From the NCBI GenBank assembly GCA_002269645.1, contig NIVC01002470.1, positions 62,001-126,000 of the forward strand: DNA of 64,000 nt, given 5' to 3'. The notes beneath the pieces are model-generated. The model was not told the DNA's origin. It did no database searches and saw only the letters and a list, made by a program, of their open reading frames with translations. Below are positions 3,001 through 37,480 of this stretch, one piece after another. Source of the DNA: Macrostomum lignano (taxonomy: Eukaryota). Position 1 is the stretch's first letter. Each line of letters opens with the position of its first letter. The translations under genes were made by a program, and so were the position numbers.

Positions 3001-3910
3001 CCATCTACCTGCACACCCACTCACCTGTCTATCCATCTACCTGCACACCCACTCACCTGTCTATCCATCTACCTGCACACCCACTCACCTGTCTATCCAT
3101 CTACCTGCACACCCACTCACCTGTCTATCCACCCGCCTGCACACCCAGCCACCTGTCCATCCACCCACCTGAACACTCAGCCACCTGTCTATCCACCCAC
3201 CTGAACACTCAGCCACCTTTTTATCCACCCGCCTGCACACCCAGCCACCTGTCTATCCACCCACCTACACACCCAGCCACCTGTCTATCCACCCACCTGC
3301 ACACCCAGCCACCTGTCCATCCACCCACCTGAACGCTCAGCCACCTGTCTATCCACCCACCTGCACACCCAGCCACCTGTCTATACACCCACCTACACGC
3401 CCAGCCACCTGTCTATACACCCCCACCTGCACACTCAGCCACCTGTCTATACACCCACCTGCACACTCAGCCACCTGTCTATCCACCCACCTGAACACCC
3501 AGCCACCTGTCCATCCACCCACCTGAACACTCAGCCACCTGTCCATCCACCCACCTGCACGCCCAGCCACCTGTCCGTCCACCCACCTGCACACTCAGCC
3601 ACCTGTCCATCCACCCACCTGAACGCTCAGCCACCTGTCTATCCACCCACCTGCACACCCAGCCACCTGTCTATCCACCCACCTGCACACCCAGCCACCT
3701 GTCCATCCACCCACCTGCACACCCAGCCACCTGTCCATCCACCCACCTGCACACCCAGCCACCTGTCCATCCACCCACCTGAACACTCAGCTACCTGTCC
3801 ATCCACCCACCTGAACGCTCAGCCACCTGTCTATCCACCCACCTGCACACCCAGCCACCTGTCTATCCACTCACCTGTCTATCCACCCACCTGCACACCC
3901 AGCCACCTGC
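1..3910. repeat. 32-bp tandem satellite (CTGCACACCCACTCACCTGTCTATCCATCTAC), nearly invariant over 1-~3125, degenerate over ~3126-3910
   Basis: Direct periodicity of 32 nt. The only recurrent variant in the first ~3.1 kb is CTAT/CCAT. Confidence 0.97.
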
Positions 3911-4942
3911 TCAGCCCATCAATGTACAAGCGCTGGTGCACTTTCAAACCAGTGGTGGCCTCGCACGCTAGCCTTGGAGCTGACGGCATCGCTGAAATTC
4001 CAACTGAATTTATTTTGCATTTTTGGCCGGCAGCGGCGCTGCCATAAATTTGGAGCTAAAATTAGAAAATTATGCGAAGCCGCATTTTATTTGACCAAAA
4101 AAGTCGGCAATTCTGGGAAACTTTCGAGAAAAAAGATAAAATTTGCGGACAATTTTTTGAATTGAAGCAGTTTTTACTGAGCAGCCAACTCAACTGTGCC
4201 CGGCACGGACTCGGAGCTTCCCCGGGCCCGAAATTCAAAAGGCCTGCCCTGCGCCTTTGTAAAATCAATAAGGCGCTCAAAGAGTTTGAACCCCGAGTCC
4301 AAGGGTTGAATTTGATGAAGCAAAAGATAATGGGTGGAATTGCTGGTTTTGTTCCTAATTCTGCGGGATGAGGCAAATATTTGCTGAGCTCTCGGCGCAT
4401 TGTTCTCCTCAGCTTCTTTTTCTGTCCGAGTTGCTTGGGGGGGTGGGTGTTGCTTCAAGCGGGCTCTTCATCATCCAGCAAATGTTGGCAACTGAAAGAG
4501 CGAGTGGCTTTCCAGCCTGAATCGCTCTCTCAATTGCGCTTGGCTCCGCGCCGTTACTTTTTTTGAGCAATGGGTAGCGATGACGCTGGGAGGCTGGGCT
4601 GCCAAAGTCATTGTCTGTGTTGTCAAGCCCCAAAGCGCGAACGCAGACCTGCAGCAGCGCGCCCGTGTTTTCGCACAGTTGTGTCTGTCTGCTTTTTTGA
4701 GAACCGCCATCTGCATCTCAATGAGGGCGAGCGTTCGCAGTGGAATTCGGGGCGCGAGTTTCCTGCTCTGCGCATGCGGGATCACGAATTCTCGGTCACT
4801 TTCGATCGATCGGCAGCTCTGGCCCGGTGCGACTCTGCATTGTGCCGAGGGCCTCATCTCTTCAGATCATTGGGAGACCGACTTTTCCCCGGTTCTTGCA
4901 TTGCACTTTTCGGGCATTTTAATCCCTGACCAGGTGTTTTAA

Positions 4943-5575
4943 TTGTCTATCCACCCACCTGCACACTCAGCCACCTGTCTATCCATCCACCTGCACACCC
5001 ACTCACCTGTCTATCCACCCACCTGGACCCCCACTCACCTGTCTATCCACCCACCTGGACCCCCACTCACCTGTCTATCCACCCACCTGGACCCCCACTC
5101 ACCTGTCTATCAACCCACCTGCACACCCACTCACCTGTCTATCCAGCCACCTGCACCCCACTTACCTGTCTATCCACCCACCTGCACCCCCACTTACCTG
5201 TCTATCCATCCACCTGCACCCCCACTCACCTGTCTATCCACCCACCTGCACCCCCACTCACCTGTCTATCCAGCCACCTGCACACTCAGCCACCTGTCTA
5301 TCCACCCACCTGCACACTCAGGTGAGTGGGTGTGCAGGTGGGTGGATAGACAGGTGGCTGAGTGTGCAGGTGGCTGGATAGACAGGTGAGTGGGGGTGCA
5401 GGTGGGTGGATAGACAGGTGAGTGGGGGTGCAGGTGGATGGATAGACAGGTAAGTGGGGGTGCAGGTGGGTGGATAGACAGGTAAGTGGGGTGCAGGTGG
5501 CTGGATAGACAGGTGAGTGGGTGTGCAGGTGGGTGGATAGACAGGTGGCTGTCTATCCACCCACCTGCTCACCGA
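4943..5575. repeat. Second block of the 32-bp satellite family, with an internal inversion at ~5321-5547
   Basis: C-rich units to 5320, then G-rich reverse-complement units, then C-rich again from ~5548. Confidence 0.93.
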
Positions 5576-5840
5576 CTAACCTATTACTAATTAGGAGGAT
5601 CAATTCAATACTCGAGTTGTTTCAGTGCCAAGTTTAGCATATAAAAAAGCAAAAACTGCAAGAGTCTGAAGCAGAAATTTATCTGTGTGCAAATTCGACT
5701 AATGCGAAACCCGCCGAGACGGCAATGCGTGGCCGGGAGCAATCTTTGATTTTAATTAGTACATAATTATTTGCACAAATATTTTGAGTCTGCCAATGAT
5801 CTCAGCCAGGACTGACATGGCCGGTTCGTCCCGAGGAAAT

Positions 5841-6908
5841 TCACTGCCGGGGCACCGGCACGCAGGTGGACTTGCACTCCCCTACCGCGCACATGTAGCT
5901 GGGGCTGCGGTACTGCGCCATGCAGTCCACGTGGTTGAAGCACTGCACCTCGAAGGCCTCGCAGCCGCCGCCTGAGTTGTAGAGAAACCGCTTGGCCCGC
6001 GGGCCCGCCAGCTCGCCGAGGCCTGTGGGAGGGAGTTGCTTTGGCTTGGATTAATCTGTTTTAAAGTGGGTTGCTAGTCTAGCCTGTGGATTAGGGGGAT
6101 TTGTAGAATTGGATTGCTAGTCTAGCAAATATGTGAATTGATAATGTGGATTCTATTTAATTCCATCCGAGTTCAGCTCAAAGCTTCAGTCCGTACGACT
6201 TGGATCTGTCTATCTGGTTCGAACCCCGTCCCAGCCCGAGTTCGAACCCCCAGCCGTTCCAACCCCCCCCCCAGCCCGAGTTCCAACCCCCTCAGCCCGA
6301 GTTCCAACCCCCCAGCCCGAGTTCCAACCCCCCAGCCCGAGTTCCAACCCCCCCAGCCCGAGTTCCAACCCCCCCCAGCCCGAGTTCCAACCCCCAGCCC
6401 GAGTTCCAACCCCCCCCAGCCCGAGTTCCAACCCCCCCCAGCCCGAGTTCCAACCCCCCCCCCAGCCCGAGTTCCAACCCCCCCCCCAGCCCGAGTTCCA
6501 ACCACCCCCCAGCCCGAGTTCCAACCCCCCAGCCCGAGTTCCAACCCCCCCCAGCCCGAGTTCCAACCCCCCCCAGCCCGAGTTCCAACCCCCCAGCCCG
6601 AGTTCCAACCCCCCCAGCCCGAGTTCCAACCCCCCCCAGCCCGAGTTCCAACCCCCCCCAGCCCGAGTTCCAACCCCCCCCAGCCCGAGTTCCAACCACC
6701 CCCCAGCCCGAGTTCCAACCCCCCCCCAGCCCGAGTTCCAACCCCCCCCCCCAGCCCGAGTTCCAACCACCCCCCAGCCCGAGTTCGAACCCCCCCAGCC
6801 CGAGTTCAAACCCGCGGATCTCGCGACGCGAACGGCGCTGGCCGCGCCTTCCTGCTGAGCTGCCAGCAGCAGGATCAGTAGGGCGATGATGGCGTGGAGA
6901 GGCTGCAT
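5841..6908 (-). CDS. Secreted Cys-rich peptide precursor, 92 aa, left copy (exons 6812..6908, 5841..6022)
   Basis: Phase-1 splice (G|GTTTGA...CACAG|GC) gives MQPLHAIIALLILLLAAQQEGAASAVRVARSAGLGELAGPRAKRFLYNSGGGCEAFEVQCFNHVDCMAQYRSPSYMCAVGECKSTCVPVPRQ*. Hydrophobic signal peptide, RAKR site, 6 Cys, GC3-rich codons. Confidence 0.8.
6225..6810. repeat. Intronic ~21-24 bp minisatellite (CCCAGCCCGAGTTCCAACCCC with variable C-run)
   Basis: Direct tandem periodicity. Fills the intron of the peptide gene. Confidence 0.95.
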
Positions 6909-7688
6909 TGCGCTCGTTTGCTTCTTCTGTTGTTGGCTTTAGTGATGTTGCAGATTCTGCGGAGGTCAGAGGTCAGAATGTAGGGTTGGCGGCAACTCGT
7001 GGGATCGAGGCGGAGTCTTCCCAGCAACCGCCAAAAGGCCACAGAGAGTGCTCGTAGAGTTTCCCCAATATTTCCCCAAACCAAGGCCAGCTTTAAAGAC
7101 TTTGGCTCCCAATTGGCCCCAATTTGAATATTTCAGGAGCCGCGCCGCTGGCCCACAAAAATCCCAGTCTGAATTTTTCATGAACTCTGCGGAGCTGCAG
7201 ACCAACTAGTTGTCCCCAGTGGGAATTCAGGGGATAAATAAGTAACGCTGTCCATTTCAAACGCAAACTCTGCAAAGTGCTCGCCCGGCCGGGCAATCAT
7301 CGTCTTACCGAAGTGTCGCCGTTGCCAGGTGGTGCCGAGGTATCCGAGAGAGACTTGCGGGAAGCGTATTCGAGCTGGGAATGGCCGCTGTCGCTTTTAA
7401 CTTGCTGTCAGGAGCCGGCGGGGTGGCTGACTGGGGGGGGGGGGGCAGCCCAGGCCAATGGTGGAGCGGGTACTGCCAACTTTTTCTATTGGATTTTTTG
7501 GTATTGATCAATATGCAAGTCAAGGTGTGAGATGCTAATTAATGCCATGCAGTCCGAGAGCGAGATTCGAACTCCCGATAGGTCCAGACAGGGTTCTGAG
7601 TGAGATCTCAGAGTCAGGCTGAGCAAGGGGCAAGGGCATCATCCAGTGCTCACACACTCTAGAAGTTCTGTTTAACTATAAAACCATT

Positions 7689-7965
7689 GCATAGCCTAGT
7701 GGTTAAGAGCGTCAGACTCACGACTTGAAGGTTCAGGGGTTCGATTCCCGATCCCCACTGGAACAATTTGTGTCCTTGAGCAAGACACTATACTTAACTC
7801 TGCATTGCTTCAGTTCACCCAGCTGTAAATTGGTTACCAGCATTAGCTAAGGTAGCTGAGGGTGTGACCCGCCAGTCCTTGGACTGAACAGCCGTACGCA
7901 GCCTTCAGATGCACCAATTGGGCCCAGTTGGGCAGGTGTAATCAATTATAATAATTATTATTTTT
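7689..7965 (+). mobile_element. tRNA-derived SINE with CORE-like central domain, left copy
   Basis: A box TAGCCTAGTGG and B box GGTTCGATTCC. Then GTCCTTGAGCAAGACACT..TTAACTC..CTTCAGTTCACCCAGCTGTAAATTGG, which resembles the MIR/CORE consensus as recalled. AT-rich tail. Confidence 0.8.
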
Positions 7966-8689
7966 ACACGAAGTATGAGATTCGCTTCACATTCCTTTCT
8001 TGCTACTCGTCAGTAGGCGATGGGAAGCATGTGAATAAGTACATGTAAGCATATCCCGTGTAAGCAAGTTAAATGTAACAAATGAGATCAGAAAATGCGT
8101 GTTATTTTCGGGGCACAACTGAAACTTCGGAGCACAGCACTGACATCTCCCAGCTTCAATTGGCGCCCCATCAAACAGACCCTGCTGGCTCGCCCCTGGT
8201 GCCACGGCAATTTTGCATGTTAATGCTTCTTTGAAGCGCACAGATCTGGATCACCAATGCAGATAACAACAGAAAACTGCGAACAGCACAAGCCAACCGC
8301 TTTTTTACCCAAGAGATGCCTGCCTGCAAGAAGGGAAAAAAACAGAGAACCCAGAATGTCATTATGCTAATCAATTGAAGCTCGCGAGCGGAACTTTTCC
8401 GACCCCAGTTTAGCGTCGGATTACAGAAAATGTAATTTAAATTTCGGATAGAAATTTGATCGATATCGAAATGGCTCGCTCCCAACTCCCCAACAACAGT
8501 GTGATGATTGTTCCAATATCAAATTGGTTTGCTTCATTGCAACTGAGAATTAGCTTTGGCATTCAGTCTAGACGCTTTGCTTTTGCACTGCTAATTTAAA
8601 AGTGCTTTACCTTCCGAGTTTTTGGTGCGACATCAAAGCGTTCTGAAACTTTTCTGATTCTATTCATTCCAGTGAGAGCTGTCAGGTAA

Positions 8690-9745
8690 ATGGGATCTGT
8701 CAGAGTCAGGTAATGGGGTCTGTCAGTATCAGGCAATGGGAACTGTTAGTGTCAGATAATGGGAACTCTCAGTGTCAGGTAATGGGATCTGCTACTGTCA
8801 GAAGGCGGGATCTGTCAGTGTCAGGTAATGGGATCTGTCAGTGTCAGGAGGCGGAATCTGTCAGTGTCAGGAGGCGGGATCTATCAGTGTCAGGAGGCGG
8901 GATATGTCAGTGTCAGAAGACGGGATCTGTCAGTGTCAGGAGGCGGGATCTGTCAGTGTCAGGTAATGGGATCTGCCAGTGTCAGGAGGCGGGATCTATC
9001 AGTGTCAGAAGGCGGGATCTGTCAGTGCCAGGAGGCAGGATCTATCAGTGTCAGGAGGCGGGATCTGTCAGTGTCAGGAGGCGGGAACTGTCAGTGTTAG
9101 GTAATGGGATCTGTAGGTGTCAGGAGGTGGGATCTTTCAGTGTCAGGTAATGGGATCTGTCAGTGTCAGGTAATGGGATCTGTAGGTGTCAGGAGGTGGG
9201 ATCAGTCAGTGTCAGGTGGGATCTGTCAGTGTCAGGAGGCGGGATCTGCCAGTGTCAGGAGGCGGGATCTGTCAGAGTCAAGTAATGGGATCTGTAGGTG
9301 TCAGGAGGTGGGATCAGTCAGTGTCAGGTGGGATCTGTCAGTGTCTGGAGGCGGGATCTATCAGTGTCAGGAGGCGGGATCTGTCAGTGTCAGGAGGCGG
9401 GATCTATCAGTGTCAGGAGGCGGGATCTATCAGTCAGGAGGCGGGATCTGTCAGTGTCAGGAGGCGGGATCTATCAGTGTCAGGAGGCGGGATCTATCAG
9501 TCAGGAGGCGGGATCTGTCAGTGTCAGGAGGCGGGAACTGTCAGTGTTAGGTAATGGGATCTGTCAGTGTCAGGTAATGGGATCTGTCAGTGTCAGGTAA
9601 TGGGATCTGTCAGAGTCAAGTAATGGTATCTGTCAATGTTAGGGAGCGGGATCAGGCAGTGTCAGGAGGTGGGATCAGGCAGTGTCAGGAGGTGGGATCA
9701 GTCAGTGTCAGGAGGCGGGACCTGCCAGTGTCAGGATGCGGGATT
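8690..9745. repeat. ~23-bp minisatellite (GTCAGGAGGCGGGATCTGTCAGT)
   Basis: Direct periodicity. Source of the repetitive SVSGGGICQCQ ORFs. Confidence 0.95.
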
Positions 9746-10664
9746 TATCAGAGTCAGCTCCTTAACAGTCAGTTCAACGGCAGTGAGAGAAGCCCAGATT
9801 CGAAAGCCAAATATTCAATTAGCGTGATAAGCAGATGGCTGGCACACAAAACCAGCAGCAGGCTGTATAATTATCAATGCTCATCCACAAAAGTTTAAGT
9901 TAGCAACAAGAATTCGTCAGAGAAAAAATGTATAATTACAGCACTTCGTATTTTCATAATTTTTTTTCTTTTGCTAAAAAACGGACTCAAGCGACAGGGG
10001 GGGGCGAGTTTAATTAACACAATGAGCAGCCCAGCGCGTGAAGATAAAAAAATCAAAATGATGAAGAACAGATTGCATGGGACTCACATGCAGCATAGCA
10101 ACTGAAAATCTGCAGTCGACGGCACCAAATGAAAATTCAATTGAAGTGGCGAGGCCCTCCCTGAACTGCTCAACTTTACAGAGTTGCACAAACAACTCGC
10201 AATTCATTAGTGTTATTGTTAAGGACTGCGGACTCGCTTATTTGGGATTTTTAAATCCCTTTTTTTCTTACGCAGAGATTGGACACTACTGCAAGTAGGG
10301 AGAGTTGACTAGTACTATATATAATCTATTTAATTAGTAATTTGCCTGCAGGTATAATAAATAAATAATGATGATAAAATAGAAGAAATAATGACATCAA
10401 CAGTTTGCTTTATACAGATTGGAACATTATAGAATTTTAGAACTGCTGTGCTCATGATTATCATTAAACAGGCGGGCAAGGCACTCGCGGGGATCTGTGC
10501 TAGGCTGGGGATTAGCTTTGGTTAGAAGATGCCCAGTGGGATTAAAGCTACGAGCTCGTAAATCAGCATTCTGTTATAATAGTCAGATTTGGCAGGAAAT
10601 ATTCGAATACACAAGCAGACAGCAAGCCTGTTAATTTCAAATAAGAATTAAATAAGTTTTCGTT

Positions 10665-11083
10665 GATGGGCCACTCAGGCATATTTACTTAGTAAAACAG
10701 CTTTCTACTTTCAGTTCAGTAGCAAGCAAGAATACATAAGCTTTTTTATAAAAATAAAGGCAGCTGAAATGACTTTGATAAGTTTAGAAGCCCAAGCTTG
10801 CAGGCGTAAACAGCTTCCTAATTGGTTCAGCGATAATGTACATTAGCCAGTCCACTGAAATGTACATGGCAGCTTTAGGCTGGAATTCCGAGAATGGCAA
10901 TAAAATTGGGGCGGGACGGGGGGCAGTGTGAAAAGGCGCGGTTGGAGTTTAAGCTGGGGATGGAGGGGGGGGGGGGTTAAGAGCCAATTAATGAGCTTTG
11001 GCTTTAAAAATGCTTCAGTTTAACATACTACTGAACTGAAAGTAGCTTACACGCAAATGTGCTGCGTGGCCCATCTAGTTATT
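10665..11083. mobile_element. MITE-like element A (perfect 18-bp inner TIR CTACTTTCAGTTCAGTAG at 10705..10722 / 11028..11045)
   Basis: Inverted termini extend imperfectly outward (GATGGGCCAC..). Interior is homologous to element B. Confidence 0.65.
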
Positions 11084-11290
11084 CTAGTATTTGTGGTGAT
11101 AACACGACTTTTGGATGACTTTTTTGAGGCTCTTACGATTCTGCAATTCACGTGATGCGCTTGTGTCTCAACAGTCGCCTCACCGTCGTATTGCAGTCGT
11201 TTGAGTCACAAGTCACAAGAGTCGCCCCAGAGCCAGTTCTTGTCACGATAAAGTTATCAACGGGCAAAGGCGACCACAGATGCTATTTTT

Positions 11291-11550
11291 AATAACTAGA
11301 CGCGTCACTTAGGCAAATATATGGGCTTTTACTACTTTCAGTTCAGTAGTAAGGAAGAAGGCAGTTGCAGATGGAAATGACATGTTATTAGTGCATCTGT
11401 CATGTACATCCACTTGGCAGCTTGGGGGAGGGGGTAAGATGACGAAAAAACCTGTGCCGCCCTAAAATACATTAAAATGCTTCTATTTAACTTACTACTG
11501 AACTGAAAGTAGTTTAAACGCAAATGTGCTGAGTGGCCCATCTAGTTATT
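11291..11550. mobile_element. MITE-like element B, same family (TIR core 11332..11349 / 11495..11512)
   Basis: Same 18-bp TIR; outer termini AATAACTAGA...TCTAGTTATT. Shared internal motifs (ATGTACAT, GGCAGCTT, AAAATGCTTC). Confidence 0.65.
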
Positions 11551-11586
11551 TTAGTCACTGTACTCTAATGTAGTGTTAATGAGAGC

Positions 11587-14043
11587 TCACAGCCGGTTGC
11601 CAGGAGCCTGCCTGCCCTGCTGCTGCTGGCTGTACTGTGTCAGCACCTGCTGTAGCGCCTGTACAGACAGCTCGTGCACCGTCTGCGGCCGGCACTGCTC
11701 CTCCAGCCAGGTGATTACGCAGCCGGACAGCTCGGCGAAGCTGCCAGCCGACGTGGACCGGTCGAAGCCGGCGAACAGCTGGTCCATCACGGACTGGAAC
11801 ACGCTGAACTTCACCTGCTCGGGCAGCGGCTGCGACTGCGGCGAAGAGGCGGCCGCAGCCCCGCCAGATGCTCCGGCACTGCTCACAAAGTGCTCATAGT
11901 TCATCTTCATTATCTTCAGCGCCATCACCTGCAGTTGGTAGACAGGTTTAGTTATTAGCTATGATTTATGAGCAACTTGTATTGTATATCACTAAGCAGA
12001 ATCCCTAGATCAAGGCTGGAATGGCACTCATCAGTACTAGAATTGCACTTATCAAGGCTGGAATGGCACTCATCAGTACTAGAATGGCACTCATCAAGGC
12101 TGGAATGGCATTCATCAGTACTAGAATGGCACTCATCAAGGCTGGAATGGCACTCATCAATACTAGAATGGCACTCATCAAGTCTGGAATGGCACTCATC
12201 TAGGCTGGAATGGCACTCATCAGTACTAGAATTGCACTTATCAAGGCTGGAATGGCACTCATCAGTACTAGAATGGCACTCATCAAGGCTGGAATGGCAT
12301 TCATCAGTACTAGAATGGCACTCATCAAGGCTGGAATGGCACTCATCAATACTAGAATGGCACTCATCAAGTCTGGAATGGCACTCATCTAGGCTGGAAT
12401 GGCACTCATCAGTACTAGAATTGCACTTATCAAGGCTGGAATGGCACTCATCAGTACTAGAATGGCACTCATCAAGGCTGGAATGGCATTCATCAGTACT
12501 AGAATGGCACTCATCAAGGCTGGAATGGCACTCATCAATACTAGAATGGCACTCATCAAGGCTGGAATGGCACTCATCAATACTAGAATGGCACTCATCA
12601 ATACTAGAATGGCACTCATCAATACTAGAATGGCACTTATCAAGGCTGGAATGGCACTCATCAGTACTAGAATTGCACTTATCAAGGCTGGAATGGCACT
12701 CATCAGTACTAGAATGGCACTCATCAAGGCTGGAATGGCATTCATCAGTACTAGAATGGCACTCATCAAGGCTGGAATGGCACTCATCAATACTAGAATG
12801 GCACTCATCAAGTCTGGAATGGCACTCATCTAGGCTGGAATGGCACTCATCAATACTAGAATGGCACTCAACAATACTAGAATGGCACTCACCAATACTA
12901 GAATGGCACTTATCAAGGCTGGAATGGCACTCATCAATACTAGAATGGCACTCAACAATACTAGAATGGCACTCATCAATACTAGAATGGCACTCATCAA
13001 TACTAGAATGGCACTTATCAAGGCTGGAATGGCACTCATCAGTACTAGAATGGCACTCATCAGTACTAGAATGGCACTCATCAAGGCTGGAATGGCACTC
13101 ATCAATACTAGAATGGCACTCATCAAGGCTGGAATGGCACTCATCAATACTAGAATGGCACTCATGAAGTCTGGAATGGCACTCATCTAGGCTGGAATGG
13201 CACTCATCAATACTAGAATGGCACTCAACAATACTAGAATGGCACTCATCAATACTAGAATGGCACTCATCAAGGCTGGAATGGCACTCATCAATACTAG
13301 AATGGCACTCATCAATACTAGAATGGCACTCATCAATACTAGAATGGCACTCATCAATACTAGAATGGCACTCATCAATACTAGAATGGCACTCATCAAT
13401 ACTAGAATGGCACTCATCAAGTCTGGAATGGCACTCATCAAGGCTGGAATGGCACTCATCAAAGCTGGAATGGCACTCATCAAGGCTGGAATGGCACTCA
13501 TCAAGGCTGGAATGGCACTCATCAAGGCTAGCACCCTCGCACCTCTTTGTGCAGTTTGTCCAGCTCGCGCTCCTGCAACTCCTTCTGCTTGGCCAGATGC
13601 TCCATGTGCCTGATTGACCTCTGCAAGATGGACGCTTTGCTCAGCGACTTGGCGTTAGTTTCTCCGGATCCGCCACCAGCAGCGGCGGCGCCGCCGGCAG
13701 CCGAGGCGCTGGGCGCGGCGCCAACCAGCTCGTACAGCTTGTCATAGCCCTGCTTGATGGCGTCCCTGCGCTTCTGCTCGGCCTGCGTGTGCAGCTCGCG
13801 CCTCCGGTCCTTCACCAGCGCGGCTGAATCGTGCGAGAAGTCGCCACCACCACCGGCGCCGCCGCTGTTGCTGCTGTCCAGCAGCATGTCCTCCCGGTCG
13901 GAGAGGCTCGGGGACCGATGGCCGCTGCGGCCGCCGCCAGCACTGCCGCCGGAGGCCTGCAGAGCGCGGGATCTGCTGCTGTGCTGACCGCTGACCTGGC
14001 GCTGCATCAAGTTGTTAAAGAGGCTGATTCTTTTGCTCTGCAT
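11587..14043 (-). CDS. MLX: Max-like protein X (bHLH-ZIP), left copy (exons 13543..14043, 11587..11928; start Met tentative)
   Basis: HTQAEQKRRDAIKQGYDKL basic helix, LSKASILQ, KE|VMALKIMKMNYE, and QVKFSVFQ..FAELSGCVITWLEEQCRPQT, matching the Mlx C-terminal domain. GAG|GTGCGA donor, TGCAG acceptor, phase 0. Confidence 0.92.
12008..13530. repeat. 21-bp minisatellite in the Mlx intron with 189-bp higher-order repeat
   Basis: Two alternating monomers (ATGGCACTCATCAAGGCTGGA / ATGGCACTCATCAGTACTAGA). Identical 189-bp blocks at 12011, 12200 and 12389. Confidence 0.95.
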
Positions 14044-16652
14044 GCTACTTACTTTCAGTAGGCAGCTCACAGTTCGCTCATCTTAATTTTATTGTTCCTA
14101 TTTTTTATTTCAAATAAAGTAAAAACAGCTTGGCTTCTGTGAAAAAAGCATCAAAAAGTTAAAAGCCTGACTATTGTTGTCAACTTACATTACTTTAAGA
14201 ATCTCAACCAAAATATAACTTTGATGAATCTTAATATTTGCTAACAATTAATTCTACATTTTGCAATTTTTTATTTCAAACTAAAATTTTAACTACTTTT
14301 TAAAAATAGTTACATACTACTGATATTGTTACAAATAAAAAAAAATCTTAGAATTATTAATAGCAATAATAAACAATCTTTTATTTTAAATTTTATAAGC
14401 ATGTATCTAACAACAAGGGATGTATGCTAATAAAAAACTAAGTTTATTTGCCACAAAGCTTGCCTCTTGTCTTATACTGAGCAAAGTAGACATTGCAAAA
14501 TCTTTTTGCATATATGTTAATTATTGGTTTAGCCTTGAGGTAGAAACTCTAGATGCAAAATATCTTTTGCATCAAAGAAACATAGCATAAGCTTCATTTT
14601 TTACTTTGATTACTAAAAATACTATGCCTTCATAGGTTTTTATGATCCTGTTTGCCTCTATTCAAGATTCTGGCCCTAAATAAGTTAAAATAAGTTATTT
14701 GCCTAGTCTAGCTCACTAAGATTTTTTAATTCTAAAAACTCATAGAGGGGCTGATAGTCATTTTGTCTGCTTCCAGTTTGTCTACCTCTCTTGTCTGCAA
14801 AAATACAATATAGTTAGCAAAGGTAGCAGAAAAAATGACTACATACCCATGGAAGTACTCAAAAGAATTAGTTGCTTATTTAAACACAAAATAAGAGAGC
14901 CATAAACATTGGACTTTAGAGTGTATTTTAGTATTAAAATTTAGTATTAAATTAAATACAGGCATAGTGTTGAAGGATAGATAAGTGCATATAATTTAGG
15001 ATAATTTTTAAAAAGAGACAACTTAAATTTTGTTTAACTTGAAAAAAATCTTTTGTGACAAATAAAGTGGGAGGACAGCTTTTTTATTATTTAGCAAATA
15101 ATTGGATTAACATATAATCTAGCAGATTAGCAGCTGATTTTACCCATAGCAAAATTTTTGTAAATTTAGTTATATAGACTGGTAATTTATTTGATCACCC
15201 TCAAGCTTAAGGCAAAAAGCAAAGCAAATAAACAAAGGAAAAGAGTGGCTGCTGACTGCAAGAGTATATTTATAATTGGTAAGTAAACAAGATAACAACA
15301 AGCTTAATCCAAAAACTAGACCCCTCTTAGGCACAATATAATAAAATATGATTGATAAAATACAAGTATTATGCAGGATTATTAGAATGTCAATACATGT
15401 ACATAGATAAATGGAACTACTTTACAAGAAATAATTCAATATGCAAGAAATACAAATAATACTAGAATAAATACATACAAGGCCACAAACAAACTATAGA
15501 TTCAATTGTAACATTACTACAATAATAATACATATAGAATATTGTTAAAATATAAAAGAATACAAGTATCACTAGCACAGCATGCATACAAGATAAGGAA
15601 ATACAATACTTGTACATATGCTTCTTTGAATTACACTGTCACACTTTGACTTAGAAAAGTTGCAAAAGTTTATAGACTACTTGTTTAATAGATAGAACAT
15701 CTATAAGCTAGATTTGACAGTAAATTATTCCAAGAATCTCAATAATTATAAAATTATTACTATATCAAATAAAATATTATACAATAATCATTCATAGCCT
15801 AGGCATTACGACTAGCTAAAGAGCAAGTGAAATATACAAGACAATTAAAGAAAAGGAATGACAAGATAGACCTATAATATCTAAAAATGTAGCTCAATTG
15901 TGAATATAGAAAATTTCTTTGGCATTTTAAACATTTAAATAAACTTATCCTGATATAATTGTATTGTAACTTTTAAATAGGCCCTAACTAGACAATTCCA
16001 GATTTAATTCCATTGCGCTAGAATCCCCAGAAATGTCACGTCTATCTGTCTTACACGACTTACAGCGACAGACAAGTGTCATTCGAGTGCAAGGGTATAC
16101 ACTCTACTCTATGGCCGACAGATCAATAATTTTTTAATGATTTGAAATTTGAAACATAAAAAGCAATAGGGCCTACATGTAATAGGTTGAAACGCTGAGA
16201 AAATCAAAGCTAGCTTATCGGTTCGTTTCGAAGAAAAGCAGCGGATAAAACAGAAAAGCAATAAAAAGCAAGTAAAACTGTTTGTGCAACTAGCTCATTA
16301 ATAGGAATATTCGAATAAATTTTAGTAAAATACATTTGCACTTTTATGTAAAATCTGTAAGAGAAGTCATCATAAGTGTGGATTTTTGTTTTACAGTTCT
16401 AAAGTGCTATATTTTAAGTTGTCGTTTTCAAGGAAACAGATTTTTAATCCAGGAAATTTTTATCTGTAGGAGTTAGGATCTAGGAAGGAGGAAAAGGCAA
16501 AAGTAGTTTAAAGAGTCTAATCATCTAGACGTGATTTTAAATATAGCTGCTTTATTTTATACCATTATGACTTCAAAGGATGACGAATATGACTATCTTT
16601 TCAAAGGTACATTCTTTATTTTGAAATTATGATATGATTTTTTCCCTTCCTG

Positions 16653-16840
16653 CAGTGGCGTACGCAGAATTTTCCATTGAAGAGGGGCGCCAACAGCCCA
16701 GGGGGAGTATCGTCCATCTGCACCGACAAGTTGCAACAATAAAGGACATTTTTAGGGTTCTATCTGGCTAGTCGCCTCTGGCAAGACCTCCATCAGTCAC
16801 CTCCCTAGGCAATTGGGGGGGGGGGCTGCGTACGCCACCG
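16653..16840. mobile_element. hAT-type MITE in Rab11 intron 1, left copy
   Basis: 15-bp TIR CAGTGGCGTACGCAG / CTGCGTACGCCACCG (1 mismatch). 8-bp TSD CCTTCCTG / CCTTCCTA; 8-bp TSDs are typical of hAT. Confidence 0.8.
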
Positions 16841-17212
16841 CCTTCCTAGCCTATTTGAGTGCTGAATTCTGGTTCATCCATGTCTCGGAATTAAGTTAAC
16901 ATGTTTTCCCTACCCATAACTCATTATCTTTCAATTTGCATTCACCCATTTTTAATGATAATGACTTTTTGTTAGTGAATCCATGCCACCCAAATAGATT
17001 GTGGTGATGTTTGATTTTAGTTCTAAATATGCTACAATTTCATGAGGAAATGAAACTTACCTATATTTTTTCTGATTTTATATTTTTTAAATTCCTTATA
17101 CAATTAACCTTAATAAATATTCTTAACTTTGACCAAACCAATACATATATATAATCCTTTGAAATCCAAAGATTATATATTAATCTACATATTTACTTTT
17201 ATTATTATTAAT

Positions 17213-17214
17213 AC

Positions 17215-17268
<54 letters not shown>

Positions 17269-17731
17269 ACAGATGCTGGCTCAGGGGTCAGCGAAGCACC
17301 CATTGGTGGAAAACAGCTGAGTCCAGCCTAGCTGCAGACTAAGAGGTAAGGCCCAGAGCCTGTAAGTCAGTGAGAAGAGTGTCAGTCAGAGTGGTGCAGC
17401 GCGCCTGGCCCTGGTGGAGTCTCCCACAAGGTGGGCTAAGCAGCAGGTCAGTGAGTGGGGGCCTGGTGCCTTGTGTGTGGGCCCGCAGGCAGTGGCTGAT
17501 CAATATCTGGCGCCGCCTCTGCAAAGTGTGACCAGGGGCAGCATGTGGGTCTAGACTGTCAGCTCAGTGTTGCTCACGTGCTTGGGGAACTAGATGCACA
17601 GGGCATTATGCAGGAGGTGATGATGGCAGGCCTCCAAGCTCGCCTCACGAGTGGCAGTCATGGGGATGGCTTCCAGCCTGTAGGTCAGCACCTGTGGTGG
17701 AAGAGTCAACTGCCTCTTCCACTTGGCAGTT
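17213..17731 (-). mobile_element. 5'-truncated, decayed RTE-clade non-LTR retrotransposon 3' end with (TAA)n tail, left copy
   Basis: [30 protein letters not shown], then after a frameshift [34 protein letters not shown]. Matches the RTE post-RT region as recalled. The tail is the ATT run at ~17213-17267. Confidence 0.78.
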
Positions 17732-18344
17732 GAGATTTTTTATAGAAGTGATAATATAGCAAAAATCATTTCCTTAATAAGTACAAATGCTATTTATCTT
17801 TTCTACTCATTTAATAGCATTTATTATTAAAAATTACAAAACCATAAGTATTATTCTCTAGATCTTTATTGTTGTTTACTTATTTTCAATTGTTACCATT
17901 TTTATATTATTATAAGATTTAATACTGCATATGGGTATTGTGGAATCCCCCTAAATACAAATATCAACTTTCCATTTTAGTTGTCCTGATAGGCGACTCT
18001 GGAGTTGGCAAGTCCAACCTGCTCAGCAGATTCACTCGCAATGAGTTCAACCTGGAGTCCAAGTCCACCATTGGTGTAGAGTTTGCTACCCGCAGCATCC
18101 GGGTTAATGGCAAAGTTGTGAAGAGCCAAATCTGGGACACTGCTGGGCAGGAGAGGTGAATACACAAGTTCTGTGTCAAACGTTTAAGACCTGGCTTCAA
18201 GAGTTGAATATTTGATTTGAAACAACCATAGTCAACGTCATTGTAAGAGAATCAGGTGCAAGGGAATCTGCTTTGCCAGCGGGGCAATGAGTCCCAGCTC
18301 CCAGTTACTGAACAAAATATTTTTAGTGTCAGTTTAGCACCGTT

Positions 18345-19317
18345 TAGTGCCACAGGCAAGAGTTTAGCGCCAAAGACAAGAGTTTAGCGCCACAGGCAAG
18401 AGTTTAGCGCCACAGACAAGAGTTTAGTGCCACAGGCAAGAGTTTAGCGCCACAGACAAGAGTTTAGTGCCACAGGCAAGAGTTTAGCGCCACAGGCAAG
18501 AGTTTAGTAGTGCCACAGGCAAGAGTTTAGTGCCACAGGCAAGAGGCGAGTTTAGAGCCACAGCCAAGAGTTTAGCTCCACAGGCAAGAGTTTAGCGCCA
18601 CAGGCAAGAGTTTAGCGCCACAGGCAAGAGTTTAGCGCCACAGGCAAGAGTTTAGCGCCACAGGCAAGAGTTTAGTGCCACAGGCAAGAGTTTAGCGCCA
18701 AAGTCAAGAGTTTAGCGCCACAGACAAGAGTTTAGCGCCACAGGCAAGAGTTTAGTAGTGCCACAGGCAAGAGTTTAGCGCCACAGCCAAGAGTTTAGCT
18801 CCACAGGCAAGAGTTTAGCGCCACAGGCGAGTTTAGCGCCACAGGCAAGAGTTTAGCTCTACAGGCAAGAGGCGAGTTTAGCGCCACAGCCAAGAGTTTA
18901 GCTCCACAGGCAAGAGTTTAGCGCCACAGCCAAGAGTTTAGCTCCACAGGCAAGAGTTTAGCGCCACAGGCAAGAGTTTAGCGCCACAGGCAAGAGTTTA
19001 GCGCCACAGGCAAGAGTTTAGCTCCACAGGCAAGAGTTTAGTAGTGCCACAGGCAAGAGTTTAGCGCCACAGCCAAGAGTTTAGCTCCACAGGCAAGAGT
19101 TTAGCGCCACAGGCGAGTTTAGCGCCACAGGCAAGAGTTTAGCTCCACAGGCAAGAGTTTAGCGCCACAGGCAAGAGTTTAGCGCCACAGGCAAGAGTTT
19201 AGTGCCACAGGCAAGAGTTTAGCACCACAGGCAAGAGTTTAGCGCCACAGACAAGAGTTTAGCAGCCACAGGCAAGAGTTTAGCGCCACAGACAAAGAGT
19301 TTAGCGCCACAGACAAG
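18345..19317. repeat. 20-bp minisatellite (AGAGTTTAGCGCCACAGGCA) in Rab11 intron 2, left copy
   Basis: Direct periodicity. Variant order mirrors 22257-23228. Confidence 0.95.
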
Positions 19318-19477
19318 ATTTATCTTCTGAATTCCGATTTGTATTCTACATGTTACCATCAACATTTGCTGTTGAAAGTTGTAAGAATTTATTTTCAAGG
19401 TCAGGAATACTTGGCTACGCCACTGGACAGACCTTCGGTTTACCTTTCACAAAGGGAGGTTTTTTCCTGCGATTTCG

Positions 19478-19622
19478 NNNNNNNNNNNNNNNNNNNNNNN
19501 NNNNNNNNNNNNNNNNNNNNNNNNNNNNNNNNNNNNNNNNNNNNNNNNNNNNNNNNNNNNNNNNNNNNNNNNNNNNNNNNNNNNNNNNNNNNNNNNNNNN
19601 NNNNNNNNNNNNNNNNNNNNNN
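19478..19622. other. Assembly gap (145 N)
   Basis: Run of N. Confidence 1.
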
Positions 19623-19702
19623 NGGCTCATCGTCCACAACTAGCCAAGTCAGAGATTTTCACGAGCTTTGCGAAAATAATCTGGCACAGACGGCATCGTC
19701 TT

Positions 19703-27527: not shown

Positions 27528-29917
27528 ATGCAGAGCAAAAGAATCAGCCTCTTTAACAACTTGATGCAGCGCCAGGTCAGCGGTCAGCACAGCAGCAGAT
27601 CCCGCGCTCTGCAGGCCTCCGGCGGCAGTGCTGGCGGCGGCCGCAGCGGCCATCGGTCCCCGAGCCTCTCCGACCGGGAGGACATGCTGCTGGACAGCAG
27701 CAACAGCGGCGGCGCCGGTGGTGGTGGCGACTTCTCGCACGATTCAGCCGCGCTGGTGAAGGACCGGAGGCGCGAGCTGCACACGCAGGCCGAGCAGAAG
27801 CGCAGGGACGCCATCAAGCAGGGCTATGACAAGCTGTACGAGCTGGTTGGCGCCGCGCCCAGCGCCTCGGCTGCCGGCGGCGCCGCCGCTGCTGGTGGCG
27901 GATCCGGAGAAACTAACGCCAAGTCGCTGAGCAAAGCGTCCATCTTGCAGAGGTCAATCAGGCACATGGAGCATCTGGCCAAGCAGAAGGAGTTGCAGGA
28001 GCGCGAGCTGGACAAACTGCACAAAGAGGTGCGAGGGTGCTAGCCTTGATGAGTGCCATTCCAGCCTTGATGAGTGCCATTCCAGCCTTGATGAGTGCCA
28101 TTCCAGCTTTGATGAGTGCCATTCCAGCCTTGATGAGTGCCATTCCAGACTTGATGAGTGCCATTCTAGTATTGATGAGTGCCATTCTAGTATTGATGAG
28201 TGCCATTCTAGTATTGATGAGTGCCATTCTAGTATTGATGAGTGCCATTCTAGTATTGATGAGTGCCATTCTAGTATTGATGAGTGCCATTCCAGCCTTG
28301 ATGAGTGCCATTCTAGTATTGATGAGTGCCATTCTAGTATTGTTGAGTGCCATTCTAGTATTGATGAGTGCCATTCCAGCCTAGATGAGTGCCATTCCAG
28401 ACTTCATGAGTGCCATTCTAGTATTGATGAGTGCCATTCCAGCCTTGATGAGTGCCATTCTAGTACTGATGAGTGCCATTCTAGTACTGATGAGTGCCAT
28501 TCCAGCCTTGATAAGTGCCATTCTAGTATTGATGAGTGCCATTCTAGTATTGATGAGTGCCATTCCAGCCTTGATGATTGCCATTCTAGTACTGATGAGT
28601 GCCATTCCAGCCTTGATAAGTGCCATTCTAGTATGATGAGTGCCATTCTAGTTGATAGTGCCATTCTAGTACTGATGAGTGCCATTCCAGCCTAGATGAG
28701 TGCCATTCCAGACTTGATGAGTGCCATTCTAGTATTGATGAGTGCCATTCCAGCCTTGATGAGTGCCATTCTAGTACTGATGAATGCCATTCCAGCCTTG
28801 ATGAGTGCCATTCTAGTACTGATGAGTGCCATTCCAGCCTTGATAAGTGCAATTCTAGTACTGATGAGTGCCATTCCAGCCTTGATAAGTGCCATTCTAG
28901 TATTGATGAGTGCCATTCTAGTATTGATGAGTGCCATTCTAGTATTGATGAGTGCCATTCCAGCCTTGATGAGTGCCATTCTAGTATTGATGAGTGCCAT
29001 TCCAGCCTTGATGAGTGCCATTCTAGTACTGATGAATGCCATTCCAGCCTTGATGAGTGCCATTCCAGCCTTGATAAGTGCAATTCTAGTACTGATGAGT
29101 GCCATTCCAGCCTAGATGAGTGCCATTCCAGACTTGATGAGTGCCATTCTAGTATTGATGAGTGCCATTCCAGCCTTGATGAGTGCCATTCTAGTACTGA
29201 TGAATGCCATTCCAGCCTTGATGAGTGCCATTCTAGTACTGATGAGTGCCATTCCAGCCTTGATAAGTGCAATTCTAGTACTGATGAGTGCCATTCCAGC
29301 CTAGATGAGTGCCATTCCAGACTTGATGAGTGCCATTCTAGTATTGATGAGTGCCATTCCAGCCTTGATGAGTGCCATTCTAGTACTGATGAATGCCATT
29401 CCAGCCTTGATGAGTGCCATTCTAGTACTGATGAGTGCCATTCCAGCCTTGATAAGTGCAATTCTAGTACTGATGAGTGCCATTCCAGCCTTGATCTAGG
29501 GATTCTGCTTAGTGATATACAATACAAGTTGCTCATAAATCATAGCTAATAACTAAACCTGTCTACCAACTGCAGGTGATGGCGCTGAAGATAATGAAGA
29601 TGAACTATGAGCACTTTGTGAGCAGTGCCGGAGCATCTGGCGGGGCTGCGGCCGCCTCTTCGCCGCAGTCGCAGCCGCTGCCCGAGCAGGTGAAGTTCAG
29701 CGTGTTCCAGTCCGTGATGGACCAGCTGTTCGCCGGCTTCGACCGGTCCACGTCGGCTGGCAGCTTCGCCGAGCTGTCCGGCTGCGTAATCACCTGGCTG
29801 GAGGAGCAGTGCCGGCCGCAGACGGTGCACGAGCTGTCTGTACAGGCGCTACAGCAGGTGCTGACACAGTACAGCCAGCAGCAGCAGGGCAGGCAGGCTC
29901 CTGGCAACCGGCTGTGA
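27528..29917 (+). CDS. MLX: Max-like protein X, right copy (exons 27528..28028, 29576..29917; start Met tentative)
   Basis: Translation identical to the left copy. Confidence 0.92.
28041..29495. repeat. 21-bp Mlx intron minisatellite, right copy
   Basis: Mirror of 12008-13530 with some unit gains and losses. Confidence 0.95.
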
Positions 29918-33733: not shown

Positions 33734-34506
33734 AATGGTTTTATAGTTAAACAGAACTTCTAGAGTGTGTGAGCACTGGATGATGCCCTTGCCCCTTGCT
33801 CAGCCTGACTCTGAGATCTCACTCAGAACCCTGTCTGGACCTATCGGGAGTTCGAATCTCGCTCTCGGACTGCATGGCATTAATTAGCATCTCACACCTT
33901 GACTTGCATATTGATCAATACCAAAAAATCCAATAGAAAAAGTTGGCAGTACCCGCTCCACCATTGGCCTGGGCTGACCCCCCCCCAGTCAGCCACCCCG
34001 CCGGCTCCTGACAGCAAGTTAAAAGCGACAGCGGCCATTCCCAGCTCGAATACGCTTCCCGCAAGTCTCTCTCGGATACCTCGGCACCACCTGGCAACGG
34101 CGACACTTCGGTAAGACGATGATTGCCTGGGCGAGCACTTTGCAGAGTTTGCGTTTGAAATGGACAGCGTTAGTTATTTATCCCCTGAATTCCCACTGGG
34201 GACAACTAGTTGGTCTGCAGCTCCGCAGAGTTCATGAAAAATTCAGACTGGGATTTTTGTGGGCCAGCGGCGCGGCTCCTGAAATATTCAAATTGGGGCC
34301 AATTGGGAGCCAAAGTCTTTAAAGCTGGCCTTGGTTTGGGGAAATATTGGGGAAACTCTACGAGCACTCTCTGTGGCCTTTTGGCGGTTGCTGGGAAGAC
34401 TCCGCCTCGATCCCACGAGTTGCCGCCAACCCTACATTCTGACCTCTGACCTCCGCAGAATCTGCAACATCACTAAAGCCAACAACAGAAGAAGCAAACG
34501 AGCGCA

Positions 34507-35336
34507 ATGCAGCCTCTCCACGCCATCATCGCCCTACTGATCCTGCTGCTGGCAGCTCAGCAGGAAGGCGCGGCCAGCGCCGTTCGCGTCGCGAGATCCG
34601 CGGGTTTGAACTCGGGCTGGGGGGGTTCGAACTCGGGCTGGGGGGTGGTTGGAACTCGGGCTGGGGGGGGGGTTGGAACTCGGCTGGGGGGGGGGTTGGA
34701 ACTCGGGCTGGGGGGGGTTGGAACTCGGGCTGGGGGGGGGGTTGGAACTCGGGCTGGGGGGTTGGAACTCGGGCTGGGGTGGGTTGGAACTCGGGCTGGG
34801 GGGGTTGGAACTCGGGCTGGGGGGGTTGGAACTAGGGCTGGGGGGTTGGAACTCGGGCTGGGGGGTTGGAACTCGGGCTGAGGGGGTTGGAACTCGGGCT
34901 GGGGGGGGGAGGGTTGGAACGGCTGGGGGGTTCGAACTCGGGCTGGGACGGGGTTCGAACCAGATAGACAGATCCAAGTCGTACGGACTGAAGCTTTGAG
35001 CTGAACTCGGATGGAATTAAATAGAATCCACATTATCAATTCACATATTTGCTAGACTAGCAATCCAATTCTACAAATCCCCCTAATCCACAGGCTAGAC
35101 TAGCAACCCACTTTAAAACAGATTAATCCAAGCCAAAGCAACTCCCTCCCACAGGCCTCGGCGAGCTGGCGGGCCCGCGGGCCAAGCGGTTTCTCTACAA
35201 CTCAGGCGGCGGCTGCGAGGCCTTCGAGGTGCAGTGCTTCAACCACGTGGACTGCATGGCGCAGTACCGCAGCCCCAGCTACATGTGCGCGGTAGGGGAG
35301 TGCAAGTCCACCTGCGTGCCGGTGCCCCGGCAGTGA
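34507..35336 (+). CDS. Secreted Cys-rich peptide precursor, right copy (exons 34507..34603, 35155..35336)
   Basis: Same 92-aa product as the left copy; the intron minisatellite is shorter. Confidence 0.8.
34605..34960. repeat. Intronic G-rich minisatellite of the peptide gene, right copy
   Basis: GTTGGAACTCGGGCTGGGGGG units starting at the donor. Confidence 0.95.
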
Positions 35337-35606
35337 ATTTCCTCGGGACGAACCGGCCATGTCAGTCCTGGCTGAGATCATTGGCAGACTCAAAATATTT
35401 GTGCAAATAATTATGTACTAATTAAAATCAAAGATTGCTCCCGCGATCCACGGCCACGCATTGCCGTCTCGGCGAATTTCGCATTAGTCGAATTTGCACA
35501 CAGATAAATTGCTGCTTAAGACTCTTGCAGTTTTTGCTTTTTTATAAGCTAAACTTGGCACTGAAACAACTCGAGTATTGAATTGATCCTCCTAATTAGT
35601 AATAGG

Positions 35607-36181
35607 TTAGTGGGTGAGCAGGTGGCTGGATAGACAGGTGAGTGGGTGAGCAGGTGGGTGGATAGACAGGTGGCTGGGTGTGTAGGTGGGTGGATAGACA
35701 GGTGAGTGGGTGAGCAGGTGGGTGGATAGACAGGTGAGTGGGTGAGCAGGTGGGTGGATAGACAGGTGACTGGGTGTGCAGGTGGGTGGATGGACAGGTG
35801 ACTGGGTGTGCAGGTGGCTGGATAGACAGGTGACTGGGTGTGCAGGTGGGTGGATAGACAGGTGACTGGGTGTGCAGGTGGGTGGATAGACAGGTGACTG
35901 GGTGTGCAGGTGGCTGGATAGACAGGTGAGTGGGGGTGCAGGTGGGTGGATGGACAGGTGACTGGGTGTGCAGGTGGCTGGATAGACAGGTGACTGGGTG
36001 TGCAGGTGGCTGGATAGACAGGTGAGTGGGTGTGCAGGTGGGTGGATAGACAGGTGAGTGGGGGTCCAGGTGGGTGGATAGACAGGTGAGTGGGGGTCCA
36101 GGTGGGTGGATAGACAGGTGAGTGGGTGTGCAGGTGGATGGATAGACAGGTGGCTGAGTGTGCAGGTGGGTGGATAGACAA
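35607..36181. repeat. 32-bp satellite block, single orientation
   Basis: Mirror of 4943-5575 but without the internal inversion. Confidence 0.93.
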
Positions 36182-37217: not shown

Positions 37218-37480
37218 GCAGGTGGCTGAGTGTTCAGGTGGGTGGATGGACAGGTGGCTGAGTGTTTAGGTGGGTGGATAGACAGGTGGTTGGGTGTGTA
37301 GGTGGGTGGATAGACAGGTGGCTGGGTGTGTAGGTGGGTGGATAGACAGGTGGCTGAGTGTGCAGGTGGGTGGATAGACAGGTGGCTGAGTGTTCAGGTG
37401 GGTGGAAGGACAGGTGGCTGAGTGTTCAGGTGGGTGGATGGACAGGTGGCTGAGTGTTCAGGTGGGTGGATAGACAGGTA
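37218..37480. repeat. 32-bp satellite block at the outer end of the right arm
   Basis: GGTGGCTGAGTGTTCAGGTGGGTGGATAGACA units. Confidence 0.92.

Follow-up and report, generated by a model that had tools for sequence, protein, structure and literature searches.

A predicted secreted six-cysteine peptide of Macrostomum lignano, its paralogue and a possible WAP-like fold

Gene structure and transcript evidence

Two segments of a 64,000-nucleotide stretch of the Macrostomum lignano genome (contig NIVC01002470.1, positions 62,001 to 126,000; the whole stretch is called the window below) raise the question of whether they hold a spliced gene that a scan of open reading frames (ORFs) does not display, and what kind of peptide such a gene would encode. 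They lie at 34507-35336 on the plus strand (copy A) and at 5841-6908 on the minus strand (copy B). An earlier note, made from the sequence alone, had described them as copies of a hidden gene for a furin-processed, secreted peptide of 48 residues resembling a WAP domain.

In copy A, exon 1 (34507-34603, 97 nt), which opens with an ATG at 34507, and exon 2 (35155-35336, 182 nt), which closes with a TGA stop at 35334-35336, join into a 279-nt ORF on the plus strand whose translation is a 92-residue precursor, MQPLHAIIALLILLLAAQQEGAASAVRVARSAGLGELAGPRAKR followed by FLYNSGGGCEAFEVQCFNHVDCMAQYRSPSYMCAVGECKSTCVPVPRQ. The intron between them (intron 2) is a phase 1, GT..AG intron, with the donor GCGG/GTTTGA at 34603/34604 and the acceptor CCCACAG/GC at 35154/35155. 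The corresponding exons of copy B, 6908-6812 and 6022-5841 on the minus strand, are both 100% identical to those of copy A. A plain ORF scan at copy A yields only a 124-residue read-through ORF and a 35-residue tail fragment, so the ORF track does miss this gene with its minisatellite intron, as the earlier note had said. Its splice and 92-residue product are likewise borne out, by translation and by the ranges of the GenBank coding sequences (CDS), and the product contains RVAR, RAKR and the spacing C-x6-C-x5-C-x10-C-x4-C-x3-C that the same note had listed.

The exact 92-residue protein is present at NCBI as PAA57578.1 and PAA57582.1, each a ‘hypothetical protein’ of Macrostomum lignano (BOX15_Mlig025436g2 and g1), which agrees with the flatworm origin suggested earlier. 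The GenBank CDS ranges of BOX15_Mlig025436g1 and g2 match 5841-6908 and 34507-35336 exactly in window coordinates, and a different contig carries a third copy, g3 (PAA49477.1, I12V), so that the gene occurs three times in the assembly. The annotation submitted for GCA_002269645.1 is a transcriptome assembled with genome guidance, drawn from StringTie, de novo assemblies and TACO, in which TransDecoder called the ORFs (PMC5730564). Since that annotation rests only on assembled RNA sequencing (RNA-seq) transcripts, the absence of a spliced transcript is very unlikely. Far from being hidden, the gene is already carried by GenBank, annotated from RNA-seq transcripts. Mlig025436 is a real, transcribed gene with one 5' non-coding and two coding exons.

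The non-coding exon of copy A ends at a canonical donor, cttcg/gtaaga, at 34110/34111. The older gene models A0A1I8I8A7 (P0002) and A0A1I8G0A0 (P0004) run from 33989 or 34045 to 34110 and then skip to 34461 or 34489, at the acceptors ccgcag/aatctg (34460/61) and, alternatively, caacag/aagaag (34488/89). A0A1I8I8A7 reads exon 1 out of frame, and a 1-nt difference in exon 2 restores the frame; this probably reflects a mistake in the older assembly.

The minisatellite of intron 2 has a G-rich unit of 21/22 nt that repeats the splice-donor region in tandem; copy A contains 17 GGT[TA][TCG]GAAC motifs. Its length differs among the three copies of the gene: 357 nt in copy A (34602-34960), 595 nt in copy B (6217-6813) and 345 nt on the g3 contig (about 10285-10630). 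Donor-like sites at 34625, 34865, 34886 and 34913 are in phase with the annotated donor, and their use would merely lengthen the pro-region.

A family of two paralogues

An exhaustive phmmer search with the 48-residue predicted mature peptide, over 1.84 billion representative proteins, returned one true relative beyond the gene's own entries, the M. lignano protein BOX15_Mlig004136g2 (P0007). Two further hits (P0005 and P0006) were spurious, both being repetitive proteins with 4-6 matched stretches each. A profile built from the two paralogues found nothing outside the Mlig025436/Mlig004136 family among 5.8 billion proteins.

Mlig004136, which is present as g1-g3 on three separate contigs, also encodes 92 residues, comprising a signal peptide, a short pro-region, KR and then FLYYSNGNCETFDIRCFSQRDCQMAYGPGYQCVILRCSLSCQLLP... 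Its identity to Mlig025436 is 38-43%. All six cysteines align, with one loop a residue shorter in Mlig004136, and its gene carries a phase 1 intron at the same position, inside a pro-region Gly codon. That intron, too, holds a minisatellite, unrelated in sequence to the Mlig025436 array. The retention of one architecture across 38-43% identity indicates a real protein family. Mlig004136 differs in its AAYKR site, which is not a furin consensus, in a longer C-terminal tail (SDRGRIA) and in being slightly basic (isoelectric point, pI, 7.8). Among the sequences searched, the family appears to consist of exactly two paralogous members and to be confined to M. lignano.

In Mlig004136g2 (NIVC01001279.1, region 5001-7480) the intron is 2.2 kb long, with a 20-nt minisatellite (6218-7298) making up over 1 kb and reaching to about 15 nt from the acceptor. 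A Mcm10-like gene lies downstream of Mlig004136g2 on the opposite strand.

Predicted processing and properties of the mature peptide

The precursor begins with a hydrophobic core, AIIALLILLLAA (12 residues, Kyte-Doolittle values up to 3.8), followed by A-S-A, and the N-terminus of Mlig004136 has the same signal-peptide-like layout. Judged solely from the hydrophobic core and the A-x-A rule, the signal peptide would be cleaved after ...GAASA.

Further along, KR/FLY is invariant in 6/6 family sequences, as RAKR/F in Mlig025436 and as AYKR/F in Mlig004136. Because Mlig004136 has AAYKR, with no Arg at P4, and no RVAR, the conserved feature is the dibasic KR site. We predict cleavage at this site by a proprotein convertase, with furin as one possibility among several; the features behind the earlier label ‘furin-processed’ are conserved only in part, as the dibasic site.

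The predicted mature peptide has 48 residues and a mass of about 5.3 kDa (5304.2 Da monoisotopic, oxidised), and it is mildly acidic, with a pI of 5.5 and a charge of -1.2. A classic cationic antimicrobial peptide, one of the roles that had been proposed for it, is unlikely at that charge and pI, and Mlig004136, with its pI of 7.8, is not cationic-looking either.

Likeness to the WAP fold

WAP domains share the spacing C3-x5-C4-x5-C5C6-x3-C7-x3-C8, which is also matched here by SLPI domain 2 (2z7f_I/4doq_B) and elafin (1fle_I/6atu), whose identities and sequences we took from the Protein Data Bank (PDB). When cysteines I-VI of the Mlig025436 peptide are read as WAP C2, C3, C4, C5, C7 and C8, the intervals C3-x5-C4, x3-C7 and x3-C8 fit both SLPI and elafin. 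The C3-x5-C4 loop ends in Asp immediately before C4, as in elafin, and the C-terminal C-x-x-G-x-C-x3-C-V-x-P is like that of SLPI and elafin. Both paralogues have six cysteines, with none upstream of Cys-I (where WAP C1 would lie) and with Ala or Val after Cys-IV (at WAP C6). With C1 and C6 both replaced or absent on this mapping, exactly the C1-C6 bridge would be missing, and the predicted disulfides are I-V, II-IV and III-VI (C2-C7, C3-C5 and C4-C8). A WAP domain is defined by eight conserved cysteines and four disulfides within 40-50 residues (PMC11408880). The peptide departs from that definition, so we call it WAP-like rather than a WAP domain.

We modelled each paralogue separately with AlphaFold2, from an input alignment of two sequences, and compared the models with PDB chains using Foldseek. 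The best model of the Mlig025436 peptide has a predicted local distance difference test (pLDDT) score of 76, and the other four score 50-61; in it a beta-hairpin follows a helix that spans HVDCMAQY. Its first-ranked match is half-SLPI, 4doq_B (domain 2; E=3, probability 0.23, root mean square deviation (rmsd) 2.1 A, 31 columns, 29% identity), with elafin 6atu_J at rank 9. For Mlig004136 the five models are consistent (pLDDT 73-77) and show the same helix and hairpin. SLPI domain 2 holds ranks 1 and 3 and elafin rank 2 (probabilities 0.72/0.63/0.44 for ranks 1-3, template modelling (TM) scores 0.54/0.56, 40 columns), and omwaprin and R-elafin stand at ranks 14-15. Over both models, the WAP matches have rmsd values of 1.9-2.7 A and TM scores up to 0.56. 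WAP chains are a handful of the 350,542 PDB chains, yet they come first for two sequences at about 40% identity. Lower down, the same lists include some scorpion CS-alpha/beta toxins (probability <=0.11), whose CxxxC and CxC motifs the peptide lacks. Knottin, CS-alpha/beta and EGF patterns, weighed by cysteine spacing only, were set aside.

Automatic UniProt names suggest two other classes. A0A267DLA0 is called ‘ShKT domain-containing’, presumably on the strength of a PROSITE profile, and A0A1I8G0A0 and A0A1I8I8A7, with the same mature sequence, are called ‘BPTI/Kunitz inhibitor domain-containing’. The two names contradict each other for an identical sequence, so the labels are unreliable. A ShKT-domain peptide would pair its cysteines I-VI, II-IV and III-V and have targets such as ion channels, as other ShKT domains do. 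Apart from the name of A0A267DLA0, the small secreted domain, with six cysteines in about 34 residues and a start of C-E, is compatible with this class (PF01549). Its last three cysteines, however, are spaced C-x4-C-x3-C, against the C-x3-C-x2-C typical of ShKT domains; there is no Pfam ShK match at E<=10, no ShK-type structure stands among the Foldseek matches of either model, and the competing Kunitz label attaches to the same mature sequence in two entries. We consider a ShKT peptide very unlikely. A Kunitz/BPTI inhibitor domain, for which the automatic names are the whole case, can be given next to no credence: neither a Pfam match (PF00014) at that threshold nor a Kunitz structure was found, and the 34 residues from first to last cysteine, compared with about 51 in Kunitz domains, exclude the label by size. 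Neither ShK-type nor Kunitz chains occur among the 19 + 26 Foldseek matches of the two models.

A number of results weigh against the WAP assignment itself. The C4-C5 loop has 10 or 9 residues in the paralogues and is predicted to be helical, compared with 5 residues in SLPI domain 2 and elafin, and neither paralogue has a CC pair. Searching Pfam with hmmscan at E<=10, using the precursor, the mature peptide and the longer model P0004, returned no family, neither WAP, ShK nor Kunitz, so that the profile comparison proposed in the earlier note came out empty. No PDB sequence matched the peptide or the two-paralogue profile. A homologue search started from human SLPI domain 2, meant to supply WAP sequences for a profile, yielded no candidates. 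An hhalign comparison, with the WAP side made up of SLPI domain 2 and elafin only, aligned 12 C-terminal columns (MCAVGECKSTCV against KCCMGMCGKSCV) at a non-significant P=0.07. On the structural side, all Foldseek E-values are >=0.8, so no match is significant; TM scores are soft for domains of about 50 residues; just 1/5 AlphaFold runs was confident for the Mlig025436 peptide; and, the alignments holding two sequences only, AlphaFold may merely recall the cysteine pattern. Release from a propeptide by cleavage at a dibasic site is not usual for WAP proteins. Finally, neither Mlig025436 nor Mlig004136 occurs in the supplementary files of PMC5816591, PMC7336406, PMC12896417, PMC5730564 and PMC5977470, which consequently provide no site of expression. 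A full-text literature search for Mlig025436 and literature searches pairing ShK or WAP with Macrostomum or Platyhelminthes also gave nothing relevant.

Taking the two sides together, we regard a WAP-like peptide as roughly an even prospect. The earlier note had read the peptide as a WAP pattern without C1 and with Ala at C6. The spacings, the Ala or Val and the missing C1 favour that reading; the Pfam result, the lack of a CC pair and a C4-C5 loop of 9-10 residues instead of 5 do not. Structure prediction places WAP domains first in the PDB for both paralogues, at scores that are not significant.

Proposed mode of action and the signalling alternative

The paralogues are unevenly conserved. 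Outside the cysteines, identity is 7/11 in the first 12 residues of the mature peptide (FLYxSxGxCExF) and 6/31 in the rest (P=0.011), and this contrast points to the N-terminal loop as the likely functional surface. The primary protease-binding loop of SLPI and elafin passes through C2, with P1 directly behind that cysteine (Leu72 and Ala24, respectively); on the WAP mapping, the residue at the equivalent position is Glu in both paralogues (CEAF and CETF).

These observations fit the following scheme. Signal peptidase would cut the 92-residue prepropeptide after ...GAASA, and a subtilisin-like proprotein convertase would then cut after the conserved Lys-Arg (RAKR/F), freeing a mildly acidic mini-protein of 48 residues locked by three disulfides. 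In it, FLYxSxGxCExF would correspond to the loop around WAP C2 with which SLPI and elafin bind proteases, and the N-terminal loop would be the working surface for an extracellular partner. It would most likely be a component of a secretion, serving as a WAP-type inhibitor or in defence, with a receptor-activating signalling peptide a close second. On balance we lean slightly towards a lineage-restricted, convertase-processed, secreted WAP-like mini-protein for which an inhibitor or defence role is the most likely. Compared with described WAP/WFDC proteins (SLPI domain 2, elafin and omwaprin; PF00095), it would share a size of about 45-50 residues, secretion and the top predicted-structure matches, and would differ in having six cysteines, in its release at KR from a propeptide and in Glu at the P1-equivalent position in place of Leu (SLPI) or Ala (elafin).

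The same precursor can be read differently, as that of an orphan cysteine-rich signalling peptide (a neuropeptide or hormone) or of a gland or reproductive secretion, with the WAP likeness convergent or an AlphaFold artefact and with the precursor plan and the invariant N-terminus after KR as what matters. A signal peptide, a short pro-region, a conserved KR and a C-terminal mature peptide are the plan of peptide-hormone and toxin precursors, and here KR and the residues that follow are kept between paralogues, with conservation highest at the newly cut N-terminus. The lack of a homologue outside M. lignano in 1.84 billion representatives, the lack of a sequence-level WAP signal (Pfam and hhalign) and the non-cationic mature peptide are in keeping with this alternative. 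It has to contend with WAP domains coming first of 350,542 PDB chains for two separately modelled paralogues and with the match of the C-terminal C-x-x-G-x-C-x3-C-V-P to SLPI and elafin; the precursor also differs from prohormone and toxin prepropeptides in having no amidation signal and no relative in described neuropeptide or toxin families (Pfam and protein searches). We regard this alternative as rather unlikely, while ranking it well above the ShKT reading.

A more specific version of the WAP-like proposal, which we offer as speculative and improbable as a whole, is a Macrostomum-restricted WAP domain stripped to three disulfides and released by a convertase in the manner of a prohormone as a peptide of 48-52 residues. 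FLYxSxGxCExF would be its active surface. Its action would be either that of a signalling ligand derived from WAP or that of a canonical-loop inhibitor whose P1 is an unusual, acidic residue (Glu), with glutamyl endopeptidases among the conceivable targets.

The gene model was already known, as an uncharacterised ‘hypothetical protein’ in GenBank. What is added here is the two-member family, the constraint on the mature-peptide exon described below, the hypothesis of a WAP core minus one disulfide and the N-terminal loop as a candidate surface. If true, the proposal would provide a compact, naturally minimised WAP scaffold and, as inhibitor or ligand, a candidate for a secreted effector in a free-living flatworm for which RNA interference (RNAi), in situ hybridisation and transgenesis are standard techniques.

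Constraint on the mature-peptide exon

The earlier note had pointed to identical exons and differing flanks in copies A and B. That is true as a description, and it is uninformative: copies A and B also agree at 194/194 positions in the unique part of the intron, at 46/46 in the 5' untranslated region (5'UTR) and throughout the first ~105 nt past the stop, differences beginning at 35442. With the intron, 5'UTR and near 3' flank unchanged as well, the exon identity of the two copies says nothing about selection.

The g3 copy is more divergent and so allows a comparison. Against the window, exon 2 has 0/182 differences, compared with 62/1710 (3.6%) in non-repetitive non-coding DNA (Fisher one-sided P=0.0017). 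The adjacent unique intron shows 8 substitutions in 151 aligned sites (5.3%) and a 43-nt indel, the 3'UTR is 2.9% different and downstream DNA 5.4%. In exon 1 there is a synonymous change and, within the signal peptide, an Ile/Val replacement. With differences of 1-1.6%, the 5'UTR and intron 1 are themselves fairly well conserved, so the contrast at exon 2 is only moderate; it indicates that the mature-peptide exon is under constraint.

Inverted duplication and genomic context

Copies A and B lie in the arms of an inverted duplication (about 3633-19477 and 37479-22095). The arms are collinear and 95-98% identical, each extends for at least about 16 kb in the window, and the duplication runs on past the left window edge. 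Right at the inner end of the left arm there is a scaffold gap of 146 N (19478-19623). Redundancy of the assembly is documented, with duplicated blocks amounting to 180 Mb (PMC5730564). The gap at the arm end, this redundancy and the placement of the three Mlig004136 copies on separate contigs together suggest that the second window copy may be a mis-joined haplotig or homeologue. The window would on this account hold one locus, with the inverted copy at 5841-6908 belonging to a haplotig or homeologous contig joined in reverse during scaffolding, and no genomic palindrome would exist. The identity and collinearity of the arms, extending beyond the window, agree with a single locus; the differences between the arms in minisatellite copy number and in a few indels mark two distinct sequences and speak against it. 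We judge a single locus a little short of an even chance. The features of the two copies are collected in Table 1.

Table 1. Positions of the features of the two Mlig025436 copies in the window
Feature	Position	Strand	Basis or comment
Copy A, 3' part of 5' non-coding exon	33989..34110	+	Older gene models A0A1I8I8A7 (P0002) and A0A1I8G0A0 (P0004); exon start upstream of 33989 possible
Copy A, intron 1, within the 5'UTR	34111..34460	+	GT at 34111; acceptors inferred from P0002 and P0004
Copy A, first coding exon	34461..34603	+	5'UTR 34461-34506; CDS 34507-34603, predicted signal peptide (about 34507-34581) and start of pro-region
Copy A, intron 2	34604..35154	+	Minisatellite, then unique part 34961-35154
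Copy A, end of pro-region GLGELAGPRAKR, closing with the RAKR dibasic convertase site (predicted)	35155..35189	+	Translation; KR before FLY kept in the paralogue
Copy A, predicted mature 48-residue six-Cys peptide (35190-35333) and stop	35190..35336	+	Translation; comparison with g3; AlphaFold model
Copy A, probable 3'UTR, extent inferred	35337..35440	+	Poly(A) signals AATAAT (35406) and ATTAAA (35421)
Copy B, first coding exon, CDS part	6812..6908	-	100% identical to copy A
Copy B, intron 2	6023..6811	-	Longer minisatellite than copy A (595 vs 357 nt)
Copy B, second coding exon: end of pro-region, predicted mature peptide, stop	5841..6022	-	100% identical to copy A

Upstream of each peptide gene, both arms contain an annotated gene for a 267-residue bHLH protein (PF00010), at about 27567-29917 on the plus strand and about 11587-14004 on the minus strand, with a 21/42-nt array in its intron (28046-29485 and 12009-13529). 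The g3 contig keeps the same gene order: Arf/Ras-like, bHLH, peptide, FAN1-like.

About 43% of the 64-kb window consists of tandem repeats, in >30 different minisatellite arrays with periods of 12-42 nt, several of them inside introns of annotated genes; genome-wide, tandem and simple repeats account for 15% (PMC5730564). A 32-nt repeat, CTGCACACCCACTCACCTGTCTATCCATCTAC, and its variants occupy 1-3877 (a 3.9-kb array at the left edge), 4944-5547, 35604-36180 and 37219-37479, with shorter arrays just downstream of both peptide genes. The array changes strand at 5317/5319, and the repeat gives rise to long spurious ORFs, such as one of 210 residues at 35549-36181.

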